Part shown: positions 1,207 to 64,000 of the stretch, piece by piece
How the letters are laid out: the number at the start of each line of letters is the position of its first letter
Position numbering within the stretch: the stretch's first letter is position 1
Virus record (IMG/VR): IMGVR_UViG_3300046517_002304
Coordinates: 310,001-374,000 of that record
DNA length: 64,000 bases
Reading direction: 5' to 3' (one strand)
Position numbers and translations under genes: made by a program
The notes under the pieces: generated by a model
Database searches by the model: none
What the model was told of the DNA's origin: nothing
Seen by the model: only the letters and a program-made list of their open reading frames with translations

Positions 1207-2810
1207 CTTACGCCTTCTTCAATCCAGCGCCGGGGGTTTTCTTCTTGGCCGAAAAATGAATTCGGTTACTGTTGTCGTAATGCCATTCGAATCTGGAATC
1301 GCCGCGAACCAGACCCTTCATAGCCCACACCAAATCTTTATCGTCGCAAGAAATGGAAACCATTGAACCGCTGATGAGCGTCTTCAAGTGTTCCGCTGCT
1401 TTGCTTGCGGCAGCATTCTGAGTCGCTTCACGACGACGCTCAAATCCGTCTCGCTTACGCTTCTCTTTATTCCAATCTCCGAGGGAAAACCCTTCAGCGA
1501 AGTTGCCCTTGCCAGCCATTTTAATTTCCTTTAAAAAAGGTTATTGAATTGTTATGAACTAGTATGGATAACTAAATTTCGATAATGTCTACAACAACGT
1601 CTTTTTCATCTAATATCAAAACTAAACATTCGGCATGTTTCTTATATTCATACAAATCTTTGTTATTCAAATTATCATTAGGTTTTTTGCGAACAGTTAG
1701 ATAACCCATTTTAACTAAATACTTTTCGGCTTTACCTACCTTCATTCCGATTGCGTTTGTTGTTTTCATATCTTGATAATTCTTGGGAATGCTTTTAATA
1801 TAACCTTATCAAATGCCTTACAGCAATCTTGCTGCAACCTGTCTATTACGGCATGTCTCCACGCGATATGAGATGGGCTAAGAAGACCCCCTGTAGGAGG
1901 GTCAACCTTATAATGCTTTTTCATACCTTGAAAAAATTGATCTTGCGATAAGCCAGTATCATTGTTCATAGCAACTTCTTGAGTAAATAAACCGCTTCTG
2001 ATATATCGCAATATGAATTCATTTTTAGTCATGGCTTGCTTTCCTTTCGCTCCGTATAACATTTTATCTCACTTACGTCTTGATATAATTTTGTGAATGA
2101 CTCTAATCCATGCTCTTCGCCTTGTGCGTTAATAAGAGCGGCAGCTTTATCGCAAATTACGCCGACTGTGAATCTGTCTCTACCTTCCCCTAAGCAATAG
2201 CACCAAGCACCGACCGCCATCCATTCTGGCTTAGGGCAGTCAGGATATATGTTAATCGTTGTCATGATTACTATTCTTTAAATCCTGTTTGTTTATTCTG
2301 CGGCGTCTTCGGCAGGCTCGCTCATATCTTTTCTTAGCCGCCCTTTTGTGTGCCGCACTTCTGTACCAGCCGCTATATTTTCTTGTGGCGGGATTATCAT
2401 GCCCGGGGCAACACCCGATATCTACCTTAGACAAATCGTCAAGAGCGTATGGTTTCATTTGTAGTCGTCCGGGTTTAACCACTTGCCTTTTCGGATGCGA
2501 TAAATTAAATGCAATACACCACTAAGAATAAATGATCCTATTTCATAAATTGCGATGCCCGCAAATATTAGTAAGAGCCAAAAAAGTGGATTATTTTCGT
2601 CCATTGTTCACCATTGCCAGCGAAGATGCGAAACAAGCCAAGCAACAAATCCAAGAAACGCAATATAACAAACCATGAGTATCACAAACTCAAATGGAGT
2701 TGCTTTCCCATGAGGCGTATCTGGATCACACCTTGAGCAAACCTCACCACGGCGGATTGCTTCGCGCTCTCCCATGTGTCGCTTGCACTGAGGGCAATGA
2801 GTTAGCATAA

Positions 2811-7260: not shown

Positions 7261-9219
7261 GATGATTTATGGATAACTAATTTGGTATGGATAGCCAGTT
7301 ATTCCTTTGAGGAAATTCTTAGCTTCATTGCCTTGTTCGTATAACTCCGTGCCACTCGTACAAAAGCATCGTAGCGGCATATCTTTTAATTTTTTAAGAG
7401 TATTCATGTGTATAATTCTTACAAATACACAGCGAGACTGATCTTTTTCCAAGAGTTTAAGAACCCACTTGAATTCTTTTTCTACTTGCTTTTCTTTAGC
7501 GGTCATTTCGCAGCAAGCCTATTTTTGATTTCGTAGATAATATTTTCTGGAACCGAAACATATACATGCTGATCGCCCGAACGAAATGGGAAAGCAGCAA
7601 TTCTGTTTTTAAAATCAATATGGGCTATAAATAAATCTGGAGCTGTCAAATCATCTACCGAAATCGTAGCATCAAACTTAGGATGCTTTGATTTCTCAAA
7701 ATTCCAATGACGCTCTTCGGTCATATCGCCGATCTTGAACGCTTGTTCTGTAATCATATTATTCATCCTTATCCCAAACAACCCTATGTCCACCTTCATC
7801 GTCAATCATATAAACTAGTATAAGCTTATCACCAAACTGGGACTTTAATCTTATAATCGCATCAGAATCAGACGATGCACGAACGCAAGGAGGATGCTCA
7901 TCCCACTTGTTAAAAACCGCATAGTAATCAAACTCAGGCATCAAACACGACCGAATCGTTTTCGCCGATTGTCCATAATGTTGCTTTACTTAATAGCTTT
8001 TTAATAGCCGGAACCGGCACTGGCCATGCTCGCATGATTTTAATCATAGTCTTTTTGCCGCTTCCGAAATAGCCGGCAATGCAAAATTTCACAATGTTTG
8101 GAGTGTAGACCATTTCAGTTGATGCGAGTCGGTATGTCATAGTATTTCCTTATGGATAACTAAATCAAGATAGGTTACCTGGCATGCCCTGCACTTTATC
8201 TGCTAAATGGCGAATTGCCTTTTTAACGTCAGATAATTGCGCCATCGTATTATTACATGTTATACAACCTGCAAATTCATTAATTAATTTTACCACATCT
8301 TCTCTAAGAAGATAAACCCCTTCATCTATTGTGTCGGATTTCTTAATATCCAATATCTTCATGGGACAGTAAAACTAAAATCATTTTTCATTGCATGCTC
8401 GCAATATTTTTTGCCAAGGTTTGAACATCACACCGAACATCCGTTTCTTGAGTTGCAGCGAATTCTAATAACAAATCAATAACGTCCATTTCGCAAAGAT
8501 ACTTTCGCCTGCTACCGACTGGATCAAAGCCGTTATCTACCGATACGCCGACGCGCACGCCAACCGGAATTGTTATAGAGCGAACTTTAATCATAATTCA
8601 ATTCCACTTATACCACAAGCATTTCCCATAAATTCTACGTCTAAGCCTTCGCCGACCAATGCCAATATATGCGTGGTCATATTTAATGCGTTGTATCCAG
8701 TAGCGTTCGCCTCCTTGGCTCCATCACGAAAAATGAGATACTCATTGTTTCTTATCGTTACTATATCGTTAGCCCTACATTCAGAAATTTTCACTTCGGT
8801 TCTCCCGTTAAAATCCAGTCAATCTTAGCAGCAGAGATAGCAACTCGGAGTTGTGCTTCTAGCGCTGTGGCCGATGTTGTTTTTCTATTTTTTAAAGCAA
8901 AGACGATTGACAGCAACTCAGCAGCCGAAATATCGCCATCAATTTTAACTCTATATTCTTCACCTGGAATTGGCTTAAGAGTAATCATTGCCACCAACCT
9001 TTATCTTGCGGTTTTCTTCTACTTGCATTTGAACTGCATGATAGCAATTTTTTACGCTATCTTCTCTATCGCAGCCATTGACATGGATTACCGGATTAAT
9101 ATCAAGGCAAACTGCTTCCATGCCGCTAGATAACACTAAAATATGAATTATACTATTCTCAACAACAACATGAACTAAATCACTGTCGTTGTTTAAATCA
9201 ATAATTCTGTTACGAAGCA

Positions 9220-15124: not shown

Positions 15125-16036
15125 GGTTTATTCCTTAATTGCTCTTTTGAAGATGAAGGTTTTAATATTAGAAGATGTTACTAACGAAGAACTATGTTCA
15201 ACTCTTTCAATACTAACTAGCTCCCATCCATCATTGCCATACTTGTTTAGATACTCCTTTAGCAACCTAGCATCGGCCCCACAACAATCATTCTTTACCA
15301 TGTACTCCCACTTCATGATTGTTCTCCGCAGAAATCAGCGGACATCTTGCTGTCCACCAACTGGAACTAAATGGCTAACCAGAGTAAGCCTTTGTCTATG
15401 CGAAAGCGGCCACACAATTTGATATGTCATACTAAATGAATTATAATTTTGTCCAGAGCAGAAGTCATCACATACATCTTGCCCTTTGTCTCGGAGAATA
15501 AGAAATCGTTCTCCATGGATATCTTCCACAACATCCATAGCTTTACATTCGCGGAGTTTCATTGGCCTTGAATCCTCAATTCCCATTTATTGGGCATTTG
15601 TAGACACGTTTGAATAGGGATGCCATCTATACTATAGGCATGCGGAGAAGCTAAAGTCATACCTCTAATTTCTGTAAATATAAGAAACCAATTATCTCGC
15701 ACAATAATCTGTGAAATACGAACATTTTTCTGCTGGCATTTGGTTATTACTGCCATCATCGCATAAAACGAATCCCTGTTTGAATTTTCCATGATTGCTC
15801 CTTATGGATAACTAAATCAATGAAACTTGTGAAGGATGTACTCCATAAATACTATGCCCTTCAGTATTAGAAATCAACCACTCAGCATTTCTACCCCACC
15901 TTGGATTTTTACTTACTGCTATAAACTCCCCGATAAAATCGTTAAATAATTCTTTATGTCCCATTTCGTCTACGCCAGATACTTTAACTTTCGTGCAGTA
16001 GGCGGGAGGATTTTCCATGATTATTTATGGATAACT

Positions 16037-16070
16037 AAAAATAGCGGTAGGAATTCCTACCGCTATTTTT
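16037..16070. terminator. Intrinsic terminator, perfect 34-bp palindrome
   Basis: AAAAATAGCGGTAGGAATTCCTACCGCTATTTTT downstream of 16093..16377, abutting the motif copy at 16026. Confidence 0.8.
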
Positions 16071-22045: not shown

Positions 22046-22075
22046 GATGTTCCTTTATGGATAACTAAAAATCAG

Positions 22076-22212
22076 TGGAGGTGCTGAGGAGTGACCTCAG
22101 GTCCAGTCAAGTGCTATCAATTATCAGAAGTCGTTTTTAAGGCGTTTTTCTTCTTTCCATCTACCACGATGGGATAATTGGGGTTCACCGCTGTCGATTC
22201 ACATTCACCCCC
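22076..22212 (-). ncRNA. Miniature tmRNA-like RNA (137 nt)
   Basis: 5' GGGGGTG...GAATCGACAG and 3' CTGGAC-CTGAG(GTCACTC)CTCAG-CACCTCC-A; acceptor stem with G3-U70 and discriminator A; motif 15 nt upstream. Confidence 0.7.
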
Positions 22213-22820
22213 AAATCATTTTATGTTTATGGATAACTAATAATCCCTATGATTAAAAGGATCTATCCGAGACATATGCCCCACCAAAAAATAAACCAGG
22301 ATAGCCCACGGCACCACGATAGACACGGTTACGCCGCAGAGTGCCGCTCCTAGCCATTCGCCGCAACCAGCAGCCTTAAGTGCCCCAACGTACAGCCAAT
22401 CTAAAAATTTGCCATACCAAATTGTCAAGTAAATCATTAATGAAATAAATGGCCCAAGTAGTACGAAAAAGGTGATATTCTTGCCCTTTTGTGTGCTGAC
22501 GAATGAACCGAAAAATTCAAACAATTCGCCGAACATGATTATCTCCTTAAAGAGTTGCTCTGCTACCGCCAAGTCCGCTAGGACATTCCCCGCCTCTTGA
22601 ACAATAATACATCATATTTTTATACAAGCAAAGTCCACAGGCCGAACAATTTCCAACAACAGGATTAGGTGATTTGTCTTGATATGGCCATTTAGAATGG
22701 CCGTCATGATCTGGATTAATAGCGGGAGGCCACGTTCCAAAATCGCTCTTAGGTACAGCATTTCGCTTAGCGATATCATCAGATGATTTAAATTTATCAC
22801 TGATATTTTGGATTACATTC

Positions 22821-25518: not shown

Positions 25519-26625
25519 GATAGGATTTTATGGATAACTAAGATATCATAGTGACCAAATGAGTATTCCGCCAATTGTTAGAGCGCTCATCTTCCAGGCG
25601 AAGCTAATAGTTCTAGAGAAACGCTGCTGATCGCTTACAGAAGGAACAAAGCGAAGCAATAACCAATCAAAAGCGCATCCATACATTCCGCCCAATAAAA
25701 CAAAAGAAAAGAACCATGTTACAATACATTGCATTGCCTCTAAAACAGTTGCCATGCATTCAATTATCATTAAAGCAACCAATACGCAAGATGGGCCAGT
25801 GGTGTTATTTTTAAGGAGAACTTCGCCATCCTTGCGATATGCTGTTCGTCCCACTCTATCATACCTATCGATGATAAAAACATAGTTATCAACATTCCAA
25901 ATAAGAATACATAACAGGCATAAACTCCTGTCATAAGTAAAAATTTTAAGAGCCATTCTATGGCTACGGCGTCAATCATAGTTGGCTCAAAATCCTACCA
26001 GTCATCCAAGCTACACACATATAAAAAATATGAACTCTTGGGTTTTCCTTGGCATCTTTATTGATAGTGAAGTAAACCAATAACACGCTCGTTAAAAGAC
26101 CTGTAAGAAAAATTTCTTTACCCATGATTTCGCCTTTATTGGTCTAGTTCCAGAATTTATGGCCGCAAACATCACACATATGCAAACTATAATAGATTTG
26201 TATATCTCCGAATGTTCCCGCCTTTGATTCTTGTCTATGTTTGATAATCGTTGTTGAATTGTGTGATATATGACACCAGATCGGCATCCATGTAATAGCC
26301 GAAATAACTCTCCAGATTGTCTTGAAAAGCTTGGTCATTTATTTCTAGTTCGGTTTTTGAATTTTCTAGTTCGGAACTCACCTTGGAAGAATAGCCATGT
26401 TAAATGATATGGCAGCAAATCCTTAACAACATGATAATCGTGAAGTAGATTGTCCTTCGGTGTATACCAGCACAGATGAGGCATCCATGAATTTTTAGGA
26501 AATAACAGCTTAAGCCTGCCGCAAAAACGGTGGCGAAACATGATAACAATTAAACCAATTAAACAATTCCCGTACTTCATGGCATTTCTCCTTAATGCTC
26601 AATCGTTCCATCCATATTTAATTAA

Positions 26626-30000: not shown

Positions 30001-31113
30001 ACCCCGCGTCAGATTTCCAGGTTCCCCGAACTTTGCCGGCGTAGGTTTCGCCTCCAGCTATATCCCTAAGCTTACCGCGAAACCGATCAAAATCGCTTTC
30101 ATCGTCCAGCGAATTTTTGCTACCGTTTATCGGAATTAGTATTCTATATTCGGTCATGGTGAGTGATAAGGGATAACTAACGCCCCTCAATTTTCTCCGC
30201 GATTACTGACATCCACATAATAAGACACTGGCACAAATACCCAACTCCTGCAAGAGGCCAGCCAAAAATAGACCTGATGCACTTAAGCATCCATTGTGTA
30301 TCTTTCGGATAATTGACTAACCATCCACCAGAACCAACGAAAATCCCACCAGTGAATAGAAATAAAATCATGAGAATATAAAATGGAAGAGCTAGTGCTT
30401 TTCTTACGTATTGCATTTTTTAGCTCGTCAGTTTGTAGCCATTTTTTTCAAGAAGCCATTTCAGATCATACGAATCAACCGACTGCTCCGCTGCATAGGT
30501 TTTAACCGTTAACTTATTGTCGTAATCCCAAAAATCCTTCATGAACCCAAGCTCAATACCATTGAGTTCAATAGTTGTGTATTTTGCCCAACCACCGAAA
30601 GGAAGCTTTCTTTTCGCTCCTTCTCGGATATGCAATTCGGTAAGTTTAATTGGTTTCATGATGGGTCTTTATGGATAACTAATTTGGGGTCTGGTTCTCT
30701 AACCCACTCTATGGCTATTCGTCCTCACAGAGAATTTCACCATCCATAATTTCTATTTTTTCGTTACAAAAACAACATTCGCAAGTATACAAAACAGATA
30801 CATTGTTTTCATAAATTGATATCTTATTTAATGTCCCACCATTATGCGGGCATTTATGAGACTTAAGCCAACCTCGTATCATGTCCTGCTCTTTTTCAGG
30901 AAATAAATTATTGGTGCTCATTCGGCACTTCCAGTTAGAATAGAGAAGTCTTTAGGCAGATTAAATTCTTCTGCCGTATCTTTGCTTGGCGATGTTATGC
31001 CGGAAATGTTAACGAGTAATCCATGATCGGCAAACGCGCTAGGAAGCACGTAGAGAATCGCCGGACCATCCAGATTAGCATCTGGAATCGCATTGGCCGC
31101 GTCCCGCAGTTGC

Positions 31114-38950: not shown

Positions 38951-39328
38951 CTAGTAGAGTTTTAAATGCTTTGTGAACGGGTCAATTTTCTCTGCATAGT
39001 CTGGCCCGATAGCCAAACAAGTTTTTGTAGGAACTCCATGAAATTCAGTCAACCCGCTGTCAGTAATAAGATAAACTTCAATTCCGGCATCCTTTACTTT
39101 CTGATACAACTCTAACATCTCTTGTTCGGAATCTATCTGTAAAACAATTTTGGGGAAATGGTTCTCCAGCCAAAACTTCTGAACATCGGTATAACTGGAC
39201 GTATTATTTTTAAAATCAGAATGCGCTCGGATAAACGCCATTACTGCATGGGACAATTGTGCAAATTCTTTTCCTTTACGTACCTTCAGATCATTACGGA
39301 TAACTATACTTTGTTTTATTTTTGACAT
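38951..39328 (-). CDS. pth2: Peptidyl-tRNA hydrolase, Pth2 family
   Basis: KQSIVIRNDL...KGKEFAQLSHA...KIVL...DSGLTEF...TCLAIGP...HLKLY. Confidence 0.92.
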   Translation of the reverse strand: MSKIKQSIVIRNDLKVRKGKEFAQLSHAVMAFIRAHSDFKNNTSSYTDVQKFWLENHFPKIVLQIDSEQEMLELYQKVKDAGIEVYLITDSGLTEFHGVPTKTCLAIGPDYAEKIDPFTKHLKLY

Positions 39329-39397
39329 TTTTTTCTATGGATAACTAAAAACGACACTATCTTATGTTTAACCTAGTTTATATAATAAGGAAATACA

Positions 39398-41313: not shown

Positions 41314-42384
41314 TTAGTTACTCCAGTTAGATGGGACACTACTCTTAACTGCTTCAATCAAAAATGGAGTAGGGTCCAAAAGATTATCTGGCTGATCTTC
41401 ATCTAATCCCCAACTAATGCTCTTAGTGGTTCCGTGAGCATACAGTTCTATATGAAGCATTGATGTAGAATGATACGGAATATCGCTTCTTTTTTTACTA
41501 TCTTTAAGTACTGGTTTAACAAAGCCAATCATTTCGTTCTTCTGAACTACTCGTCCGACCGTAATACCTGGGTTTTCTGTTATTTCACCATAATTGATAA
41601 CACCAGTTGCGCCAGCAACCAACACAGATCGGGTATTATTCCACCATGGCGACCCCGCTTTCTCGCCTGTGAAATCTTCAACGGCAACCACAACGCCTCT
41701 CTCCATAGCAAAAACGTGCGCATCCTTACTGCAATAAAGATCAACTCCAGTATGATGGTCATATTTACGAGCTACACCGAATGCGCCTGGATGTTTGCCT
41801 GTCGGGATAAATTTACTTTTAAGTATAGAGTAATGATATACTGGATATCTCCATACAAAGAATCGCTTAACAGAATCAACAATGTCAGAAATTTCTGTCA
41901 TTCCTCCCACGCCAACATCGCCACAAACCAATTCTTTAAGAACTGGTTGCCAAATGGTCAAATGAGGAACGTGGCGCTGTACGATGCTGATATGCTCCAT
42001 GGTAATAGGATGTTCCCACATTGCGGTATTAGCCGCAGGAGCAAGTACGATAGGCTTAGTGCGGTCCCATGCCCTATAGATACTGGTCAGAAGATTATCG
42101 CAGATACCATTAGCAAATTTAGCCAAGGTATTCATGCTAAGCGGAGCTATAACCAGCACATCCGCTTTTCTTCTAAGATCTATATGGAGTACGCTTTGAT
42201 GAGAATTCCAACAATCCCATTCAGAAGCATCATCAAAAATCGTGCCGAAATATTCAGGCAGAGTAAACCGCTTCGCGGATTCTGTGAAGACAACGTCAAC
42301 ATGGCCAATTTCTGAAAGTTCTCTCTTGATTTTTGGACCAAGAGTTGCTGCCACACTGCCAGTTATGCCAAGGAGGATATTCAT
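41314..42384 (-). CDS. coaC: Phosphopantothenoylcysteine decarboxylase (HFCD flavoprotein) fused to an M23 peptidase-like domain
   Basis: GITGSVAA, HIDL...APLSMNTLAKFANGICDNLLT, PAANTAMW, LVCGDVG; C-terminal HTGVD...MLHIEL...DPTPFL. Confidence 0.85.
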   Translation of the reverse strand: MNILLGITGSVAATLGPKIKRELSEIGHVDVVFTESAKRFTLPEYFGTIFDDASEWDCWNSHQSVLHIDLRRKADVLVIAPLSMNTLAKFANGICDNLLTSIYRAWDRTKPIVLAPAANTAMWEHPITMEHISIVQRHVPHLTIWQPVLKELVCGDVGVGGMTEISDIVDSVKRFFVWRYPVYHYSILKSKFIPTGKHPGAFGVARKYDHHTGVDLYCSKDAHVFAMERGVVVAVEDFTGEKAGSPWWNNTRSVLVAGATGVINYGEITENPGITVGRVVQKNEMIGFVKPVLKDSKKRSDIPYHSTSMLHIELYAHGTTKSISWGLDEDQPDNLLDPTPFLIEAVKSSVPSNWSN

Positions 42385-42386
42385 GA

Positions 42387-43103
42387 TTAGTAGTATCCTT
42401 CAATGATATCAATTAAGCCTGCTGCATTATAAATGGGTAAAGAGTGCTTCAGAAAAAACGGCTCTTTATTCGGCCTAACAACCGTCAAATTATGATTTCC
42501 ACTTTTTATTTCATTAAGGAGATTACCAACACACATATCGGCATTAGTAGATTGGATCTGTTTTTCACAAGCTTCAATCAGATACTTCTGCGAAACATCC
42601 GTCAGAAGTTTAAATCCGACAAGCAATGCAAACGGACACCATTTTTTAACCAGCTTAATAATCTTGGTTGTCTTCTTAAGACTTATAATTAACTCCTCTT
42701 CATTGGAGCTAATCTTCCCATTGGATGGAACGGGCGCATAATCACTGACTGCCGCAGCCAGTATGATTACATCTGGTTCGTATTCGCCACAAGAATATCC
42801 TTTAACCTTATCAAAGTAATCGTTGTAGTCTACGTACTCAACACCATCGTATTGCTTAGAATAGCTGTTATAATTCTCAAGCATTTCATATACATTATCT
42901 TCTGCTTCAATTCCTTTTGTAGCATCAATGCGTTTAGAGAATGGAGTATCGGAGCCTTTGGCATAAATGAAAACAACTTCATGGCCAGCTTTCATAGCGG
43001 CCAGAGCAAGGATAGAGCCAAATCGGCCAGTAGAATTGTTGCCGATATGACGCACATCATCAATGGGCGCTTTGGTGCCACCGGAGGTTATGAGAAATTT
43101 CAT
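42387..43103 (-). CDS. coaB: Phosphopantothenate-cysteine ligase
   Basis: LITSGGTKAPIDDVRHIGNNSTGRFG, AAAVSDY, KISS, LVGFKL. Confidence 0.9.
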   Translation of the reverse strand: MKFLITSGGTKAPIDDVRHIGNNSTGRFGSILALAAMKAGHEVVFIYAKGSDTPFSKRIDATKGIEAEDNVYEMLENYNSYSKQYDGVEYVDYNDYFDKVKGYSCGEYEPDVIILAAAVSDYAPVPSNGKISSNEEELIISLKKTTKIIKLVKKWCPFALLVGFKLLTDVSQKYLIEACEKQIQSTNADMCVGNLLNEIKSGNHNLTVVRPNKEPFFLKHSLPIYNAAGLIDIIEGYY

Positions 43104-46063: not shown

Positions 46064-47533
46064 TTACGCCGAAATTTCGGCGTACCTTTCATTGTTAAGA
46101 ACTTCCAGCATAGACTCATACGGAGTCACGGAAATTCCGCCAAGCAAATACTTCAAAATGACTGGCGAACAGCCGCTCACAAGATAAGTTCCACGCTCGT
46201 CCTTCTTCACCGGAACGCCCTTCTCCGGAGTTGCATTCACGTTCCAGAAAACAAGCTTCGGCATTTCATAACCGCTTTGCTCGTACTTCTGCTTAATAAC
46301 TTCAAAATTAGTTTTATCATTATCTCTGCATGCAACATCAAACTGCATGTCGGAAATAATGTAAAGCACATTCGGCATTTGATGCAAAGGAACATTATTC
46401 TCCACCGCAGTAGAGAGAACCACATCAAACACCGCTTGCAGGTTAGTGTTCTGATTCCAGTCAGCACGACGCAAGTTAGCGTCCTTTTCCTTCAACGTCT
46501 TGCCCTTCAACTTCTGCAAAGACGGTCGGTTAGAAAAAGTAATGAAAGCATCCTTGAATGCACCCTGATTGCGCTCCGCAAAGTAGATTGCCAGTGAAGT
46601 GCAAACATCCAAAGGATTTCCGTTCATGCTACCGCTAACGTCAGCGATAACAAGACCATTATGCGGATTATCCTTAAGATAATCAGGAAGCGCCTTCCAC
46701 TGCAACTCTAAGGACCGAGCCTGTTGCTCATCGGAATATCTAATGGCCTTTATAATATCATAAGGATAAAGAGTTCCTGCCTTAATTTCAGCTTCGCCCT
46801 TTTCCACTTTTTCCAAGTATTCGGTATATCTCTCACCGTCATGCTTATGAAATGCCGTTCGGTAAATCATGCTTGCACGACTAGGAACACGCTCATAGTT
46901 AATGGCGTCCCATTTTCCTGCACACATATTCTTCTCAACAATATTAATGCGGGTTCGCAGACCAACCAGCATCTTGCGGTATTCCTTCGCAGAATATCCA
47001 AGGCGATTTGACAGGAAATTCGCCAGTTGAACCGTCTTTTTGCTGCTGGTGTTGTTGGACGGCATCCACTTACCAAGCAACGAAACTTCTCCGCTGCTGG
47101 AAAGGTCGGCATTCAACTGCTTAGAAATAAATTCAAGTACCGCCTGTTCACATGGCGTACCAATCAAACAAAACAAGTCATCCCATCGTCCGAAATGAGG
47201 AATGTGCTTGATGTTTTTAAGAACAGCTTCCTTATGATTATTAGCAAGGAACGTCAAAAGACGACGAACTACATCGCGTTCGCCTTGCCCACCACGAATA
47301 TCGCGGAAGTGAAGCAGACATCGCAATGCTAGAGTATTGTCCTCTGAAAATGCTCTACCGAACAGATGTTCAACACTTTCCCAATTACCTTTTAGGGAAG
47401 AACGACAAGCCGCACCCATCGCATAGAAGTCTAGCAAATCAGACTTCGTAGACTTGAGCGTCTTGGCTCCGTTCGCAGTTTCAGTGGTATTGAGGCTATC
47501 CTCAAGGTTATTTACGAATGTATTTTCGTCCAT
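46064..47533 (-). CDS. DUF2828 family TROVE/Ro60-like protein with C-terminal vWA domain
   Basis: TANGA, RDIRGGQGER, FGRWDDL, GKWMP, INYERVPS, MIDAS DVSGSM, ISDMQFD, VFWNV. Confidence 0.85.
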   Translation of the reverse strand: MDENTFVNNLEDSLNTTETANGAKTLKSTKSDLLDFYAMGAACRSSLKGNWESVEHLFGRAFSEDNTLALRCLLHFRDIRGGQGERDVVRRLLTFLANNHKEAVLKNIKHIPHFGRWDDLFCLIGTPCEQAVLEFISKQLNADLSSSGEVSLLGKWMPSNNTSSKKTVQLANFLSNRLGYSAKEYRKMLVGLRTRINIVEKNMCAGKWDAINYERVPSRASMIYRTAFHKHDGERYTEYLEKVEKGEAEIKAGTLYPYDIIKAIRYSDEQQARSLELQWKALPDYLKDNPHNGLVIADVSGSMNGNPLDVCTSLAIYFAERNQGAFKDAFITFSNRPSLQKLKGKTLKEKDANLRRADWNQNTNLQAVFDVVLSTAVENNVPLHQMPNVLYIISDMQFDVACRDNDKTNFEVIKQKYEQSGYEMPKLVFWNVNATPEKGVPVKKDERGTYLVSGCSPVILKYLLGGISVTPYESMLEVLNNERYAEISA

Positions 47534-48041: not shown

Positions 48042-48116
48042 TGGCTGTGGTCAGATTTGAACTGACGATCTCAAGGTTATGGGCCTCGCGGGGACTCCAG
48101 GCTCCCCCACACAGCG
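48042..48116 (-). tRNA. tRNA-Met(CAT), initiator-like, CCA not encoded
   Basis: Acceptor CGCTGTG/CACAGCC (1:72 mismatch), D arm GGGG/CCCC, anticodon arm CGAGG-CCCATAA-CCTTG, T arm GTCAG-TTCAAAT-CTGAC. Confidence 0.9.
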
Positions 48117-56159: not shown

Positions 56160-57059
56160 TCATGCGGGGACTTCGCTGGTTTTTCTTTTTAACAAAGCAT
56201 GAAACAAAAAAGCCGTCCTATTACTAATAGACTTTCTTGCTTCCTTGCTCATAACAATTTCGCCTTCGGCCTCCCTGGATACATCTTCCAACATAGCTTT
56301 GACTACATCTGCTGTTCCAGAAACCCCTATATCCTGGGGCAGCTTATCAAGCACATGACGCAATCTTTCCTCTACTACCCATTCTTCCGCTATAGCTCTT
56401 GCGTCATCAAGAACTTGAACATCGGCATCATTTACTTCACGAGGAGTTTTAGTTTCCATAAACTCTTTGCGCTTATGCTTACAAATAATTCTACCGCCAT
56501 TATTAAGAGTGCATTCCACGATGGGTCGTAAGACAACTCCCTCTCTGATATGATTGTCTCCCATGCCATTTTTAATAGCCTGAGTAGACGGCCTATCGCG
56601 TTCCGCGTCTATAGCTTCAAGAGTAGCCGGAATCTTCGCATAATCAACAAAATCTAATCCTAGTTTGCTACAAACATCATGAGCGTTAACAACAGACAGC
56701 CAAACTTCATCGTGTTGGCCATCGGCAGTGAAGGAAACCTTAACGTCAAATCCAGCAAACCTAAGATGCGGCCCATACCAAGCAGACATGCCCATCAGCT
56801 TTCCGCCATATGCTTCCCCAAAAACAGTACAGTCTCGGTCGGGAAACATTTCCAAAAACTTAGCGAGCAAGGTTGGCTGGTCAAATAATTTTAAGAAATT
56901 AACATGATTCGCACCACCAGAAGAAAAATGAATTTTCTTTTCAGCGAATTTCCAAGATAAATGACTCGAAGTCCCGTGAATTTTTTCGAGTGAAAATAAT
57001 TCCTTAAACATAAGGACGGTTGTGTCCTTATAAAGGTTAGAAATATGCATGAACCCCAT
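56160..57059 (-). CDS. ATP-dependent RNA ligase (Rnl2-like)
   Basis: Motif I EKIHGTS, FGEAYG, FDV, EGVVLRP, KHK...F.E; C-terminal RLRHVLDK helical domain. Confidence 0.8.
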   Translation of the reverse strand: MGFMHISNLYKDTTVLMFKELFSLEKIHGTSSHLSWKFAEKKIHFSSGGANHVNFLKLFDQPTLLAKFLEMFPDRDCTVFGEAYGGKLMGMSAWYGPHLRFAGFDVKVSFTADGQHDEVWLSVVNAHDVCSKLGLDFVDYAKIPATLEAIDAERDRPSTQAIKNGMGDNHIREGVVLRPIVECTLNNGGRIICKHKRKEFMETKTPREVNDADVQVLDDARAIAEEWVVEERLRHVLDKLPQDIGVSGTADVVKAMLEDVSREAEGEIVMSKEARKSISNRTAFLFHALLKRKTSEVPA

Positions 57060-61978: not shown

Positions 61979-64000
61979 TCTGCTGGTTCCGGTATATCAA
62001 TGCTTTCATCCGTAAAATCTTCTATGTCAAAGTCAGCCTTCAACGCCTTGCCTCTTGATGACAACCATACTACCACATCTTTGTTATCTTGTGGATTTTT
62101 TTTAGTGTTATAAAACCTCATCCAAAATCTATCCTTGCCCATTCGCTCCATGTGAAACGAACATCTAGAAGCAGAATCAGATACAACAATTTCGTCTAAA
62201 TCACCGTGCTTATCAAGACGGATTAATAGATTACCGACCCTTATTTCTTTTGTCATTATTTTTCTTACCTTTAATTGGTTTTTTAACGGGCGGCTTTCTA
62301 GGGGCTGCCGGCCTTCTAGACCCACCATGAAACATATTAAATAAATCATTATAAGTCATATACGTTATTCCTTCTGACTGACGGGGAGCCTCAGCCTGCT
62401 GTACTCCTCCTTCGCCAGACTCGCGCTCTTCTGCTGCTTGCATGCCCCGCTCAAAATCGGAAGCTTGCTGTGCTGGAGCTGATCTACGTTGGTCGGTCTT
62501 CTTTGGTGTATTCCCATTAATCATGACATTTACATACTCTGTTGATAACTTCTTAACGTCAATTACGCGAGTGTCAACCGAAAACACCCAAGGCTCATTG
62601 TAGTATTGCCCTCCACCATTAACATGCAATCGCACTGCAATGAAAGGCAGTTCAATCGCCTTAATTTCCATTACAGATCCATATAATCCAGTATCGTTGT
62701 TGGTAGCAGTAATAAACATGCCAACGTCTAAATCGTCGGCGCGAGTGATGAACGGACTTGACATTATTCTCTCCTCAGGAGCAATGATTCTACCTTGCAC
62801 TTCAAGGCATCAACCTCTTCCACATGCTCAAGATGATACTTCTTCATCAAGTGAGAAATCTGGTTGACGGCCGCAGTGTTATGGCAGTTTCTTTCAAGAA
62901 ATTCCAATGCAACTAAGGCAAGGGAAACTTCTTTTCTATTGAACTTCATTATTAGTGCCTGAGTTCCTCAAAGGAAATATAAAGTGCAGCAATAATGCAG
63001 GAAATAGCCGGGATAAGACATTCGGTATTTCCACTGCTAACCATAATCATACATCTCGTAAACGAGATGCCTAAAAAAACTAAAAGTAAAGTGCGGAAAA
63101 AGGCATGCGAAAGTCGTAGAAAGGTTTTCATGATGGTTCCTTATGGATAACTAAGTTTCGAAAGGATGTTAAAATTTGATCATATTCATACGTAGCCGAA
63201 TTTCTTTCACTGTTTACCCATTCCGTAACCCACTGAATGGCCTTCGCCATATTCTCTTCTGTGATTGCGTCATAAGTCACCCAGCCATACTCGTCATCTA
63301 TCGTATAGCCAAACTCATGCCCATAATACGTTCTGCAAAATTTAAACTCAGCAATACTGTTATGGTGATACAAGCCTTTTTGATGCTTATCAGGAGTAAA
63401 CCCCCACTTAGTTAAGAAATCATGATCTGCTTGTGAAATGCCTTCTGGTAGATTCATGATTTCGCATTCCACAAAGAATTTTCAATGCAGGCTAATTCTT
63501 CGACGGCTCTTTTATGATGTAGAAGAATTTCATTAGTATCATAAAGGCAGGATTTCATGATTTGCCTGATTGCCCAAGCTACGGTGCGACTGGTAATTTT
63601 TCTTATAAAAGTATTTACTTTGGGAAATTCTGGTGAATAATAATCAAGACAAAAGTATTCTTCTTCCCAATGCTGGCACGCAAAATGCATGCCTTTAATA
63701 GTTTTATGTCTGATGTTTATAACCTTAATGTCAGCATCAGGCAGGCCGACCTCATCATTCTTATAAAGATAAATTGGATCACCAAATCCAAACTTATGCA
63801 GAATAGCAATTTGTCTGCTGGTAAGCTTCTTCACTGTATCTCTACCCCGTTACGGAGCCACAAATTCCACTGAATCATTTCTAATCGTCTTTTGCGGATA
63901 CGACGATATTCTTCTCTGGTAATCAGATCATCGCTTTTCATAAAACGATGAACATAACAATCTCGTAGCACGGTTCTATCCGCTATATCAAGACGGGTGT

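Follow-up and report, generated by a model that had tools for sequence, protein, structure and literature searches.

A 137-nt phage RNA from a conserved family of miniature tmRNAs without a conserved degradation tag

Introduction

The tmRNA is regarded as near-universal in bacteria and nearly uniform in design, comprising a tRNA-like domain (TLD), four pseudoknots and an open reading frame (ORF) that encodes a degron. A 137-nt locus in a 511-kb phage (IMG/VR record IMGVR_UViG_3300046517_002304) raises the question of whether a much smaller RNA of this type, without pseudoknots and without a conserved tag, is encoded by phages, and what it may do. The analysis was based on a 64,000-nt stretch of this record (positions 310,001 to 374,000), hereafter called the window. 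In a first-pass annotation made from the sequence alone, the locus was described as a miniature tmRNA-like RNA with no apparent degradation tag, inferred either to free stalled ribosomes without marking phage proteins for ClpXP or to act as a decoy titrating SmpB/AlaRS. The observation was confirmed, since every structural feature listed in that annotation is present. Its interpretation is partly supported: the identification as a miniature tmRNA-like RNA is strongly supported, while the two functional proposals rest on inference only. The locus belongs to a conserved, apparently undescribed family of shrunken tmRNAs, which keep the alanine-accepting end and the restart codon but have lost all pseudoknots and any conserved degradation tag, so that phages may rescue or block stalled ribosomes without marking proteins for destruction.

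Structure of the Locus

The element is encoded on the minus strand, and its parts are as follows.

22076-22212, minus strand: whole miniature tmRNA gene of 137 nt, with the 5' end at 22212 and the discriminator A at 22076; CCA is not encoded, and the next bases are CUG
22206-22212, minus strand: acceptor stem, 5' strand GGGGGUG, with G3 of the G3-U70 pair
22194-22205, minus strand: stemless D-loop analogue AAUGUGAAUCGA, ending AAUCGAC
22186-22193, minus strand: helix P2a, 5' strand CAGCGGUG
22173-22180, minus strand: helix P2b, 5' strand CAAUUAUC
22157-22172, minus strand: hairpin H3, CCAUC-GUGGUA-GAUGG, in the place of pseudoknot PK1
22126-22154, minus strand: hairpin H4, AGAAG/CUUCU, closing a 19-nt loop that holds the restart-codon context
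22114-22143, minus strand: putative restart codon GCC (22143-22141) and 8-codon frame ALKTTSDN, followed by UGA UAG
22118-22125, minus strand: helix P2b, 3' strand GAUAAUUG
22104-22113, minus strand: helix P2a, 3' strand CACUUGACUG, with bulges, running into GGAC
22084-22104, minus strand: GGAC junction and T arm CUGAG-GUCACUC-CUCAG
22076-22083, minus strand: acceptor stem, 3' strand CACCUCC (U70), plus discriminator A73
22226-22240, minus strand: upstream copy of the phage motif TTAGTTATCCATAAA, 13 nt before the RNA 5' end; probable phage promoter element
22054-22068, minus strand: downstream copy of the same motif, 7 nt after the RNA 3' end, starting the next gene (ORF 22045-21806)

The acceptor strands pair 7/7 (22206-22212 with 22083-22077), the P2b strands pair 8/8 and the T stem pairs 5/5. 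Helix 2 is built from CAG/CUG, inner pairs and CAAUUAUC/GAUAAUUG, with an internal loop separating P2a from P2b. The unconstrained minimum free energy fold reproduces exactly this structure (-40 kcal/mol), although its z-score of -2.0 is weak evidence on its own. The GC content of the element is 0.47, against 0.40 for the surrounding 4 kb.

The motif TTAGTTATCCATAAA occurs 39 times in the window against 4.7 expected, with 36 copies on the minus strand, and the two copies flanking the element are exact. It usually lies 5 or 8 nt before an ATG. Here it precedes a non-coding gene, from which it is inferred that its role is not simply ribosome binding.

The standard detectors were negative for this locus, which reflects how divergent the RNA is and not its absence. 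In the window, ARAGORN found only a tRNA-Met, and Rfam returned nothing at the gathering threshold and only a 10-bit tmRNA_permuted hit at E 8.9. No hit to the tmRNA model RF00023 (gathering threshold, 47 bits) was obtained for the window even at E 10. As had been stated in the first-pass annotation, no smpB was found in the window: a Pfam sweep of 51 minus-strand ORFs of at least 115 aa returned 18 families and no SmpB, and ten further ORFs scanned separately also had none.

A Conserved Family of Miniature tmRNAs

Degenerate pattern scans revealed 39 distinct relatives of 120-141 nt (loci designated by L numbers). Most of them are on viral or metagenome contigs, including 155-511-kb genomes, several sit inside phage tRNA arrays within 3-10 nt of tRNA genes, and a few, L143, L187 and L193 among them, are on CPR-like bacterial contigs. 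MAFFT alone misaligned the inner helices, and the alignment was obtained by two rounds of covariance-model realignment. A covariance model (R2) built from 28 relatives without the window sequence hits it full length (model positions 1-136) at 87.6 bits, E = 1.1e-18, as the only hit in 64 kb. The window copy thus matches the family in its six helices (acceptor, P2a, P2b, H3, H4 and T) in fixed order, its GUGGUA hexaloop, its A(-4)/GCN loop and its length. That relatives might carry a full-length tmRNA of which this locus is a deletion remnant had been named beforehand as a refuting outcome, and the opposite was found: relatives carry the same miniature, with compensatory changes.

All six helices covary. 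In 30 distinct sequences, 91.9% of paired cells are complementary, against 61.1% in shuffles (0/500 shuffles reach it), and 31 of 37 pairs show double changes. The covariation score is 0.788, against 0.188 shuffled and at most 0.113 when the 3' partners are slid. Acceptor pairs 5-7 covary (GC/CG/AU/UA) with 100% paired cells. Double changes were observed in 8 of 9 pairs of P2a and 6 of 6 pairs of P2b, that is, 14 of 15 pairs of helix 2, and covariation in 5 of 5 pairs of H3, 5 of 5 pairs of H4 and 4 of 5 pairs of the T stem.

Some of the sequence conservation is affected by the search itself. The G3-U70 pair is present in all 30 aligned members, but the search patterns required GGGG...CTCCA, and UCGAC is invariant partly because the patterns required it. 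The GUGGUA loop was required by the metagenome pattern, but in the unbiased viral scan the loci L124, L126, L138 and L123 also have it.

The Rfam model RF00023 scores 11 of 13 viral relatives tested above its gathering threshold (47.7-74.6 bits), aligning the tRNA-like domain and helix 2 (as in L129) and deleting 280 model positions. Rfam scans of short stretches gave truncated or no alignments, while a wider stretch gave this one. ARAGORN found none of the 16 viral members scanned. A local ARAGORN run on the whole of L141 reported a tmRNA overlapping the miniature, but a run on the 300-nt subsequence did not. Surveys of phage translation genes therefore undercount these RNAs, as Rfam also misses the more diverged ones.

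The window copy is the most deviant member at the elbow. Its D-loop has UG where 29 relatives have GG, while UCGAC is present and there is no D stem. Its T loop is GUCACUC instead of UUCGAUU, in which U55, C56 and A57 are kept, but positions 54/58 are G/C here, A/U in L146, L151, L162 and L223, and U/A elsewhere. It is the lowest-scoring member against the family model (87.6 bits against 94-122).

No close relatives of the phage itself were found. Megablast, tblastn and blastn against INPHARED phages gave no match, the 775-aa neighbour protein found only the source contig in IMG/VR, and a scan of IMG/VR for the promoter-like motif gave chance single hits plus pieces of the same contig. No conserved neighbour gene was found either, since all-against-all blastp of 648 flanking ORFs from 39 loci gave no cluster present in three or more loci. 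SmpB was not among 25 of the 42 families found for 87 flanking ORFs. Another class of 92 nt from the short-gap scan (L208, L209, L221, L222 and L235) lies inside the 3' end of a ~525-aa ORF and varies at third codon positions, and it was not counted as part of the family.

The Restart Region and the Missing Tag

The loop of H4 reads AAAAAC|GCC in the window. In the family, the A at -4 is present in 29/30 members, the G and C of the GCN codon in 29/30 and 28/30, and the third base is free (C18/G5/U4/A3). In E. coli, A86 (-4) is the most conserved upstream base and the main determinant of frame choice (PMC2481249). The first-pass annotation had started the frame at ACG, giving (A)TTSDN. By comparison with relatives, the restart codon is the invariant GCC, three codons upstream in the same frame, which gives (A)ALKTTSDN. 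This frame ends in UGA UAG as had been noted, and all three frames stop.

The absence of a degradation tag is supported in a stronger form than had been proposed, since across the family there is no conserved terminated ORF at all. An in-frame stop after GCN occurs in only 11 of 30 members, fewer than in the other two frames (16 and 21), the peptides are unrelated, and several GC-rich members have no stop in any frame downstream. A conserved tag ORF was thus rejected. The window frame ends in ..SDN and not in a hydrophobic ..(L)AA C-terminus.

The conserved UAG in GUGGUAG is not a stop codon, because its G is the stem-closing base of H3 and covaries with its partner (C-G, U-A, G-C). A PK1-like pseudoknot from the GUGGUA loop was also rejected: by inspection of the alignment, no conserved complement was found downstream, and the candidate partners (UGCC in the H4 loop and CC in the 3' internal loop) vary while the loop does not. 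There is no room for helix 5 and PK2-PK4, as the interior is 50-60 nt.

Comparison With Known tmRNAs

The standard one-piece bacterial tmRNA (ssrA; Rfam RF00023), e.g., the 363-nt E. coli tmRNA, shares the acceptor stem with G3-U70 and A73, the stemless D-loop ending UCGAC, the GGAC junction and T arm, helix 2 with an internal loop, an element between helix 2 and the restart codon, and the A at -4 with a GCN restart codon. In contrast, the window RNA has 137 nt instead of about 350, PK1 is a plain hairpin, H5 and PK2-PK4 are absent (280 model positions are replaced by about 50 nt), the restart codon sits in a closed hairpin loop, and there is no conserved stop and no hydrophobic ..LAA-type tag end. 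The window copy also has a non-canonical T loop and scores below the Rfam threshold.

The TLD-only tmRNA of mycobacteriophage DS6A (Mao et al., 2009, as cited in PMC4131195 and PMC11915505) is likewise a phage-encoded, drastically shortened homologue with an intact alanine-type tRNA-like domain and no tag ORF. It was located here at JN698994 28478-28557, is not annotated in the GenBank record and scores below the Rfam gathering threshold (43.2 bits). The DS6A RNA is 80 nt long, consisting of the tRNA-like domain plus a 6-bp helix capped by about 20 nt. It matches R2 only through the TLD and the first 6 bp of helix 2 (48.2 bits), with the 76 model positions for P2b, H3 and H4 deleted, and therefore lacks the GUGGUA hairpin and the A(-4)/GCN loop, whereas the window RNA has the whole interior.

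The CDS-less organellar tmRNAs of jakobid mitochondria and Mallomonadaceae plastids (~65 bp) and the 2-aa-tag tmRNAs of Fermentibacterota are natural precedents for tmRNAs whose tag reading frame is lost or reduced to almost nothing, while SmpB is retained by the host cell (PMC11915505). By their descriptions, these are organellar or bacterial and either TLD-only or otherwise full-sized; none is described with a three-way junction carrying a conserved restart loop, and none is a phage family.

Engineered minimal E. coli tmRNAs follow the same design logic, in which tRNA-like domain, helix 2, stabilising hairpin and restart region are sufficient for tagging in the laboratory (PK2-4 replaced by single strands, Nameki 2000; PK1 replaced by a hairpin, Tanner 2006 and Wower 2009; reviewed in PMC3968760). 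The engineered RNAs keep a terminated tag ORF and helix 5, while the natural miniatures do not conserve a stop.

Proposed Ribosome Rescue Without a Degron

The likeliest role is alanyl-, SmpB-dependent ribosome rescue without a ClpXP degron. We put this reading as a whole at about 0.5, with about 0.9 for membership of the window RNA in the miniature tmRNA family and about 0.45 for the mechanism. The structure, the covariation, the family membership, the conserved restart context and the absence of a conserved terminated frame rest on the sequence comparisons, while transcription, processing, alanylation, SmpB binding, ribosome entry and the fate of the nascent chain are all inferred. In this view, the element is a genuine, selectively maintained gene that keeps the complete tRNA-like domain, with the AlaRS determinant G3-U70, A73, a T arm and an SmpB-type stemless D-loop, and a shortened helix 2. 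The RNA would be transcribed from the repeated promoter-like motif 13 nt upstream, trimmed by host RNase P and 3' processing, provided with CCA and charged with alanine by host AlaRS. It would then bind host SmpB and EF-Tu, since no smpB was found in the window, enter ribosomes stalled on broken mRNAs, accept the nascent chain and place GCC in the A site. In this copy, the ribosome could terminate normally after eight codons, and the released protein would carry a short polar tail that lacks the C-terminal LAA-type ClpXP degron. The net effect would be more ribosome-rescue capacity during infection without condemning the rescued proteins.

The reduced design is feasible, as PK2-4 are dispensable and PK1 can be replaced by a small stable hairpin (PMC3968760). 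Rescue is favored over a decoy because a pure SmpB sponge needs only the tRNA-like domain, which is all that the DS6A RNA has (PMC4131195). Two members sit in apparently bacterial chromosomal contexts (L143 between secY and adk/map, L187 near rpsO), where a self-inhibitor makes little sense. Plaque formation by the hybrid phage lambda-immP22 does not require correct frame selection on tmRNA (PMC2481249). It reportedly needs ribosome release rather than tagging (Withey and Friedman). On the other hand, canonical termination on the RNA cannot be the general mechanism given the stop counts above, and the stops of the window copy may be chance in 40%-GC sequence. Furthermore, the restart region is locked in a hairpin loop on a three-way junction, so that its threading into the mRNA channel is an assumption of this view.

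These results point to a widespread natural class about one third of the usual tmRNA size, carried mainly by phages, which keeps exactly the parts that laboratory deletion studies found sufficient and drops the degradation tag. If the RNAs rescue ribosomes, they define the natural minimal trans-translation RNA and would also show that phages separate ribosome recycling from proteolysis. If they are decoys, they are an RNA-based counter-measure against a host quality-control system that can restrict phages.

A more speculative reading, which we consider unlikely but not excluded, is that a conserved frame-setting A and GCN codon without a conserved stop reflect a mechanistically distinct, stop-less form of trans-translation shared by many phages and some CPR bacteria. 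The ribosome would accept the Ala-charged RNA and engage the restart loop, and the cycle would end by drop-off and hydrolysis of the peptidyl-mini-tmRNA (this phage encodes a PTH2 peptidyl-tRNA hydrolase at 38951-39328), by a very short Ala-containing tail, or by deliberate jamming of host rescue.

Alternative Explanations

The main rival, less likely on present evidence, is an anti-trans-translation decoy. The RNA would titrate host SmpB (and perhaps AlaRS or EF-Tu), or enter stalled ribosomes and block them, so that host tmRNA cannot tag and destroy phage proteins made from damaged or cleaved phage mRNAs. The tRNA-like domain, which is the SmpB-binding part, is the best-conserved part. A TLD-only molecule similar to the DS6A RNA strongly inhibits E. 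coli tmRNA, perhaps by titrating SmpB (PMC4131195; PMC11915505), and host tmRNA tagging can impair phage propagation (PMC6207430). The lack of a conserved stop codon fits an RNA that is not meant to complete a rescue cycle. The A(-4) region contacts SmpB during frame selection, and its conservation could therefore simply strengthen SmpB capture; an S1 or SmpB ligand has been proposed (PMC2481249). However, a sponge would not need the invariant GCN, the invariant GUGGUA hairpin or the fixed three-way-junction geometry, which are conserved across GC contents of 38-74%, and some members lie in apparently bacterial chromosomal contexts.

It is improbable, though conceivable, that the family is functional but this particular copy is a drifting remnant that no longer folds a working elbow. 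The D-loop has lost one of the two G residues that contact the T loop, the T loop lacks U54 and A58, and the copy has the lowest family score, no RF00023 hit and no close relative of its lineage among the searches above. Against this, all six helices are intact, mostly through sequences different from those of relatives, GUGGUA (6/6), A at -4 and GCC are kept, and the gene keeps its own exact copy of the promoter-like motif. The joint change of positions 54/58 looks like coordinated change rather than decay.

Still less likely is a tRNA-like RNA with a different job, such as a decoy substrate for host anti-phage RNases that target tRNA or tmRNA, a component of the phage RNA-repair module, a primer or an integration-site remnant. 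Family members and the window gene lie among RNA-repair and tRNA-maintenance genes: the window has two RNA-ligase-domain proteins, PTH2 and an exoribonuclease, L157 has RlaP and an HD domain, L162 a CCA-adding-type nucleotidyltransferase, and L178 a T4 Rnl1-type ligase. However, an att-site remnant would carry only the 3' part of ssrA, while here both halves are present and covary, no integrase is adjacent, and no neighbour protein recurs among the 39 loci. The conserved features are precisely those used in trans-translation (G3-U70, GGAC/UCGAC, A(-4) and GCN).

Chance resemblance in an intergenic spacer, for which the weak fold z-score and the negative ARAGORN and Rfam results might speak, is refuted by the match to a model that never saw this sequence, by the covariation, and by the generic TLD pattern scan, in which 17 of the 20 matching loci (14 distinct sequences) had 7/7 acceptor and 5/5 T-stem pairing that the pattern did not require.

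Structure of the element

The element is encoded on the minus strand, and when read 5' to 3' from 22212 to 22076 it is a 137-nt sequence that shows every feature listed in the first-pass annotation. The observation reported there is thus confirmed. From the 5' to the 3' end, with the paired elements given together, the RNA consists of the following parts:

Acceptor stem GGGGGUG/CACCUCC, with a G-U pair at position 3-70 and an unpaired A after it
Unpaired segment of 12 nt ending in AAUCGA, followed by C
Bulged helix (P2a), CAGCGGUG with CACUUGACUG
Internal loop, AACCC / AUAG
Perfect 8-bp helix (P2b), CAAUUAUC/GAUAAUUG
Hairpin H3, CCAUC-GUGGUA-GAUGG
Hairpin H4, AGAAG/CUUCU, closing a 19-nt loop
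GGAC, then a 5-bp T stem with the loop GUCACUC

The unconstrained minimum-energy fold gives exactly this structure (-40 kcal/mol), but the z-score against shuffled sequences is only -2.0, so folding energy alone would not establish the element. No ORF of 40 aa or more crosses the region on either strand. Within the window, ARAGORN reports only a tRNA-Met at 48042-48116, and Rfam reports nothing at this locus at gathering thresholds. At E values up to 10, Rfam gives only a 10-bit match of the T arm and the 3' acceptor strand to tmRNA_permuted.

Genomic setting

The window is part of IMGVR_UViG_3300046517_002304, a viral contig of 511,233 bp, in which nearly all genes of the window are on the minus strand and the GC content is about 40%. 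The motif TTAGTTATCCATAAA occurs 39 times with up to 3 mismatches, against 4.7 expected, and 36 of these copies are on the minus strand. These 36 sites, which follow the form TTAGTTATCCATAA(A/G), recur about every 1.8 kb and always in the direction of the genes, for example at 63140-63154, 30668-30682, 25527-25541, 22226-22240, 22054-22068, 16024-16038 and 7266-7280. The motif usually ends exactly 5 or 8 nt before an ATG that is often preceded by CATC, and its last bases there run into an AAGGA-type Shine-Dalgarno sequence. It looks like a phage-specific promoter fused to the ribosome-binding site. It was not found as a repeated motif in any other IMG/VR contig returned by the scans. One exact copy ends 13 nt upstream of the first G of the RNA, while the next exact copy starts 7 nt after its last base and precedes the ORF 22045-21806. 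Because the conserved core of the motif also precedes this non-coding gene, it is read here as a phage promoter element rather than a translation signal. This remains an inference, and no sigma-70-like promoter or intrinsic terminator is seen on this strand.

The neighboring genes are uninformative and comprise a 79-aa and a 111-aa ORF, a DnaJ-domain protein, a GNAT acetyltransferase and a 775-aa protein without family match. Pfam scans of 61 ORFs found no SmpB. They did find several proteins that together suggest an RNA repair or translation-maintenance region. A DUF2828/DUF7788 vWA-type protein (46064-47533, minus strand) lies next to the only tRNA, the tRNA-Met (48042-48116, minus strand), and an RNA-ligase-domain protein lies at 56160-57059 (minus strand). 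A second RNA-ligase-domain ORF, an RNase T/Rv2179c-type exoribonuclease, a metallo-beta-lactamase-fold protein and YqeY- and NADAR-domain proteins are also present in the window. Furthermore, a full-length PTH2-type peptidyl-tRNA hydrolase (PF01981, E 5.6e-33) is encoded at 38951-39328 (minus strand) and is preceded by two motif copies (39334-39348 and 39293-39307). It is an archaeal/eukaryotic-type enzyme in a phage and could hydrolyze peptidyl-mini-tmRNA if the rescue cycle ends by drop-off. Two adjacent genes at 41314-43103 (minus strand) carry the flavoprotein domain (PF02441, fused to a weak M23 peptidase match) and, as inferred without assignment to a particular ORF, the DFP domain (PF04127) of CoaBC-type phosphopantothenate metabolism, which is unusual cargo for a phage.

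Relatives in viral, metagenomic and genomic collections

IMG/VR was scanned with a degenerate pattern that asks only for generic letters of the tmRNA tRNA-like domain, with 70-100 nt between the two halves (GGGG, 10-13 nt, TCGAC, gap, GGAC, N6, TC, N12, CTCCA), and 20 loci were returned. Seventeen of the 20, representing 14 distinct sequences, have perfect 7-bp acceptor stems and perfect 5-bp T stems. All but two of these distinct sequences, namely the window's own copy and that of locus L124 (L numbers denote the loci recovered in the scans), have a canonical UUCRANY T loop, and many are followed by CCA. None of this was demanded by the pattern. A narrower pattern that included the hairpin loop GTGGTA was used for two other collections. 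In the metagenome collection, 29 of 45 hits were true by the same criteria, whereas in the 185,579-species genome collection only 2 hits were true, both on short MAG contigs labelled Parcubacteria and Saccharibacteria. Altogether, 39 distinct sequences of 120-141 nt were obtained.

Further IMG/VR scans with shorter inner gaps revealed about 27 more distinct tRNA-like-domain RNAs of 89-118 nt, many of which keep a hairpin loop of the type GAAAGGCCCAAG. With longer gaps only two were found, at 153 and 162 nt. The 137-nt form is therefore one discrete size class within a broader set of miniaturized tmRNA-like genes and not a random deletion product. The count of about 27 excludes a 92-nt class (L208, L209:3341-3432, L221:4649-4740, L222 and L235:5970-6061), which has a perfect tmRNA-type acceptor stem, T arm and UUCGACU loop and a covarying T stem, yet lies inside the 3' end of a ~525-aa ORF and varies at third codon positions. 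This class may be a tRNA-like shape embedded in coding sequence or an attachment-site mimic.

Covariation of the helices

Since MAFFT alone could not align the inner helices, two rounds of covariance-model realignment were used. The resulting model R2, built from 28 relatives without the window sequence, finds the window element as the only hit in 64 kb, with 87.6 bits, E = 1.1e-18 and model positions 1-136. In an alignment of 30 distinct sequences, 91.9% of cells form standard pairs, against 61.1% after shuffling (0 of 500 shuffles reach the observed value), and 31 of 37 pairs have changes on both sides. The covariation score is 0.788, against 0.188 for shuffled alignments and at most 0.113 when the 3' partners are slid by 1-3 columns. 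The alignment was fitted to the model, which favors the structure somewhat; however, independent constrained folds of the individual sequences give the same architecture in most members. Every helix is supported, with 3 of 3 variable pairs in the acceptor stem, 8 of 9 in P2a, 6 of 6 in P2b, 5 of 5 in H3, 5 of 5 in H4 and 4 of 5 in the T arm.

Relation to tmRNA

The Rfam tmRNA model RF00023 scores 11 of 13 viral relatives above its gathering threshold, at 47.7-74.6 bits. In the alignment of L129, one of these relatives, the model matches the tRNA-like domain and helix 2 and replaces 280 consensus positions (PK1, reading frame, helix 5 and PK2-PK4) with 50 nt. ARAGORN found no tmRNA in any of the 16 viral family loci scanned. 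At L141:1883-2016, where the mini lies in an 11-tRNA array, a local ARAGORN run on the whole locus reported a "tmRNA" overlapping the mini, but a run on the 300-nt subsequence found nothing.

The content of these 50 nt is not arbitrary. In the H4 loop, two adjacent bases, G and C, are nearly invariant (29/30 and 28/30), and the next base takes all four values (C18, G5, U4, A3), which is the pattern of an alanine codon GCN. The base four positions upstream is A in 29 of 30 members, the one before it is most often U (13 of 30), and positions -2 and -3 are A in 26 of 30. In E. coli tmRNA, the restart codon G90 is preceded by U85 A86 G87 U88 C89, and A86, at -4, is the most conserved upstream base and the main determinant of frame choice (PMC2481249). 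The loop is therefore best read as a retained restart region. Hairpin H3 lies between helix 2 and this region, where PK1 lies in normal tmRNAs. It has been shown that PK2-4 can be replaced by single strands, and PK1 by a small stable hairpin, without loss of tagging (reviewed in PMC3968760), and the natural minis correspond closely to that engineered minimum.

Absence of a conserved tag

Starting at GCN, the window copy reads GCC UUA AAA ACG ACU UCU GAU AAU UGA UAG, that is, ALKTTSDN followed by two stops. This is the frame proposed in the first-pass annotation, begun three codons earlier. Across the family this does not generalize. Only 11 of 30 members have any in-frame stop before the 3' end, fewer than in the +1 frame (16) or the +2 frame (21), and the resulting peptides (for example AQAKT, ALD and AHRKHRKFPK) are unrelated in length and sequence beyond the first three or four positions. 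Several GC-rich members (L166, L152, L142, L120 and L134) have no stop codon in any frame downstream of the loop. There is thus no conserved, terminated tag and no hydrophobic LAA-type end, which is the part that ClpX binds (PMC3968760). The earlier claim that the RNA has no apparent degradation tag is confirmed, and the deeper point is that canonical termination on the RNA cannot be a family-wide requirement.

Distribution and gene context of the family

Sixteen loci come from IMG/VR viral contigs, including ones of 355,825, 155,054, 93,511 and 84,546 bp. Thirteen of 39 loci have tRNA genes on the same strand within about 1 kb, and in L141, L156, L172, L136 and L138 the mini is 3-10 nt from the next tRNA, inside arrays of up to 32 tRNAs, which implies co-transcription and tRNA-type processing. 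CCA is encoded in 13 of 39 members, but not in the window copy. No neighboring protein recurs in three or more of the loci. The flanking genes include phage hallmarks, such as a large terminase in L133, a phage DAM-like/GNAT protein in L134 and a ribonucleotide reductase in L132. RNA-maintenance enzymes are also found, namely a CCA-adding/poly(A)-polymerase-family nucleotidyltransferase in L162 (2262-3656, plus strand), the relative with an acceptor stem identical to that of the window RNA, an HD-domain gene abutting the mini together with an RlaP RNA-repair nucleotidyltransferase in L157 (344-1842, minus strand), and a T4 Rnl1-type RNA ligase in L178 (4662-5840, plus strand).

Two loci look bacterial. 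In L143 (43-4415, metagenome contig Ga0247727_10039615), the family member (2008-2141, minus strand) lies between secY and adk-map, apparently interrupting the tail of a bacterial ribosomal-protein operon together with a 212-aa ORF of unknown family. In L187, a Parcubacteria MAG, it lies 2 kb from rpsO. These two share variant internal loops and may represent a CPR lineage, and some CPR-like bacteria may use a mini-tmRNA as their own ssrA or may have acquired it on an insertion. The family is therefore mostly, but not exclusively, viral.

Deviations of the window copy

The window RNA keeps all six helices, mostly with sequences unlike those of its relatives (P2b, for example, is 8 bp of AU-rich sequence), and it also keeps GUGGUA, A(-4) and GCC. 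It deviates at the elbow, where the D-loop has UG in place of the GG of 29 relatives and the T loop is GUCACUC. The normally invariant T-loop pair of positions 54 and 58 (22095 and 22091 in the window) is U and A in most members, A and U in L146, L151, L162 and L223, and G and C here, a coordinated swap at a tertiary pair. That these positions change together argues for constraint rather than decay, although this is inferred. The window copy is the lowest-scoring member against R2, and no sister phage was found for comparison of this combination. 

Inferred mechanism

Sequence analysis shows an alanine-type tRNA-like domain, helix 2, a hairpin at the PK1 position and a restart-type loop, all under purifying selection, as well as tRNA-like genomic placement of family members and a dedicated copy of the phage motif upstream of the window gene. 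The steps that would follow are inferred, namely transcription from that motif, RNase P and 3' processing, CCA addition, charging by host AlaRS, binding to host SmpB and EF-Tu, entry into stalled ribosomes, transpeptidation and placement of GCC in the A site. In this view, termination of this copy at UGA UAG would release the protein with a short polar tail that is not a ClpXP degron. The interpretation in the first-pass annotation is supported in part. The identification as a miniature tmRNA is well supported, whereas tag-free rescue, a decoy role or a stop-less mechanism are possible functions proposed from sequence alone.

Rescue without degradation is favored, with a probability of about 0.45, over a decoy, which is considered less likely. 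There are three reasons for this preference: a sponge needs only the tRNA-like domain, as in mycobacteriophage DS6A; the restart loop and the H3 hairpin are conserved across very different GC contents; and some members are chromosomal in bacteria. The main argument against rescue is the missing stop in most relatives, which leaves room for a non-canonical end of the cycle or for an inhibitory role. The published observation that host tmRNA tagging can block phage propagation (PMC6207430) gives a rationale for either reading.

Comparison with the tmRNA of mycobacteriophage DS6A

The window RNA belongs to a sizeable, previously unremarked family of miniature forms of the known tmRNA. No description of 90-140-nt phage tmRNAs with a retained restart loop was found in full-text literature searches, although these left out most subscription journals and a prior description cannot be excluded. 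The known phage precedent is DS6A, which is reported to carry a tmRNA that is "little more than the TLD", and a similar molecule inhibits E. coli tmRNA (PMC4131195; PMC11915505). The DS6A RNA was located at JN698994 28478-28557, between gp33 and gp34, and is not annotated in the GenBank record. It is 80 nt long and scores 43.2 bits with RF00023, just below the Rfam threshold of 47 bits. It matches R2 only through the tRNA-like domain and 6 bp of helix 2, with the 76 positions of P2b, H3 and H4 deleted. The window RNA is therefore a different, richer form.
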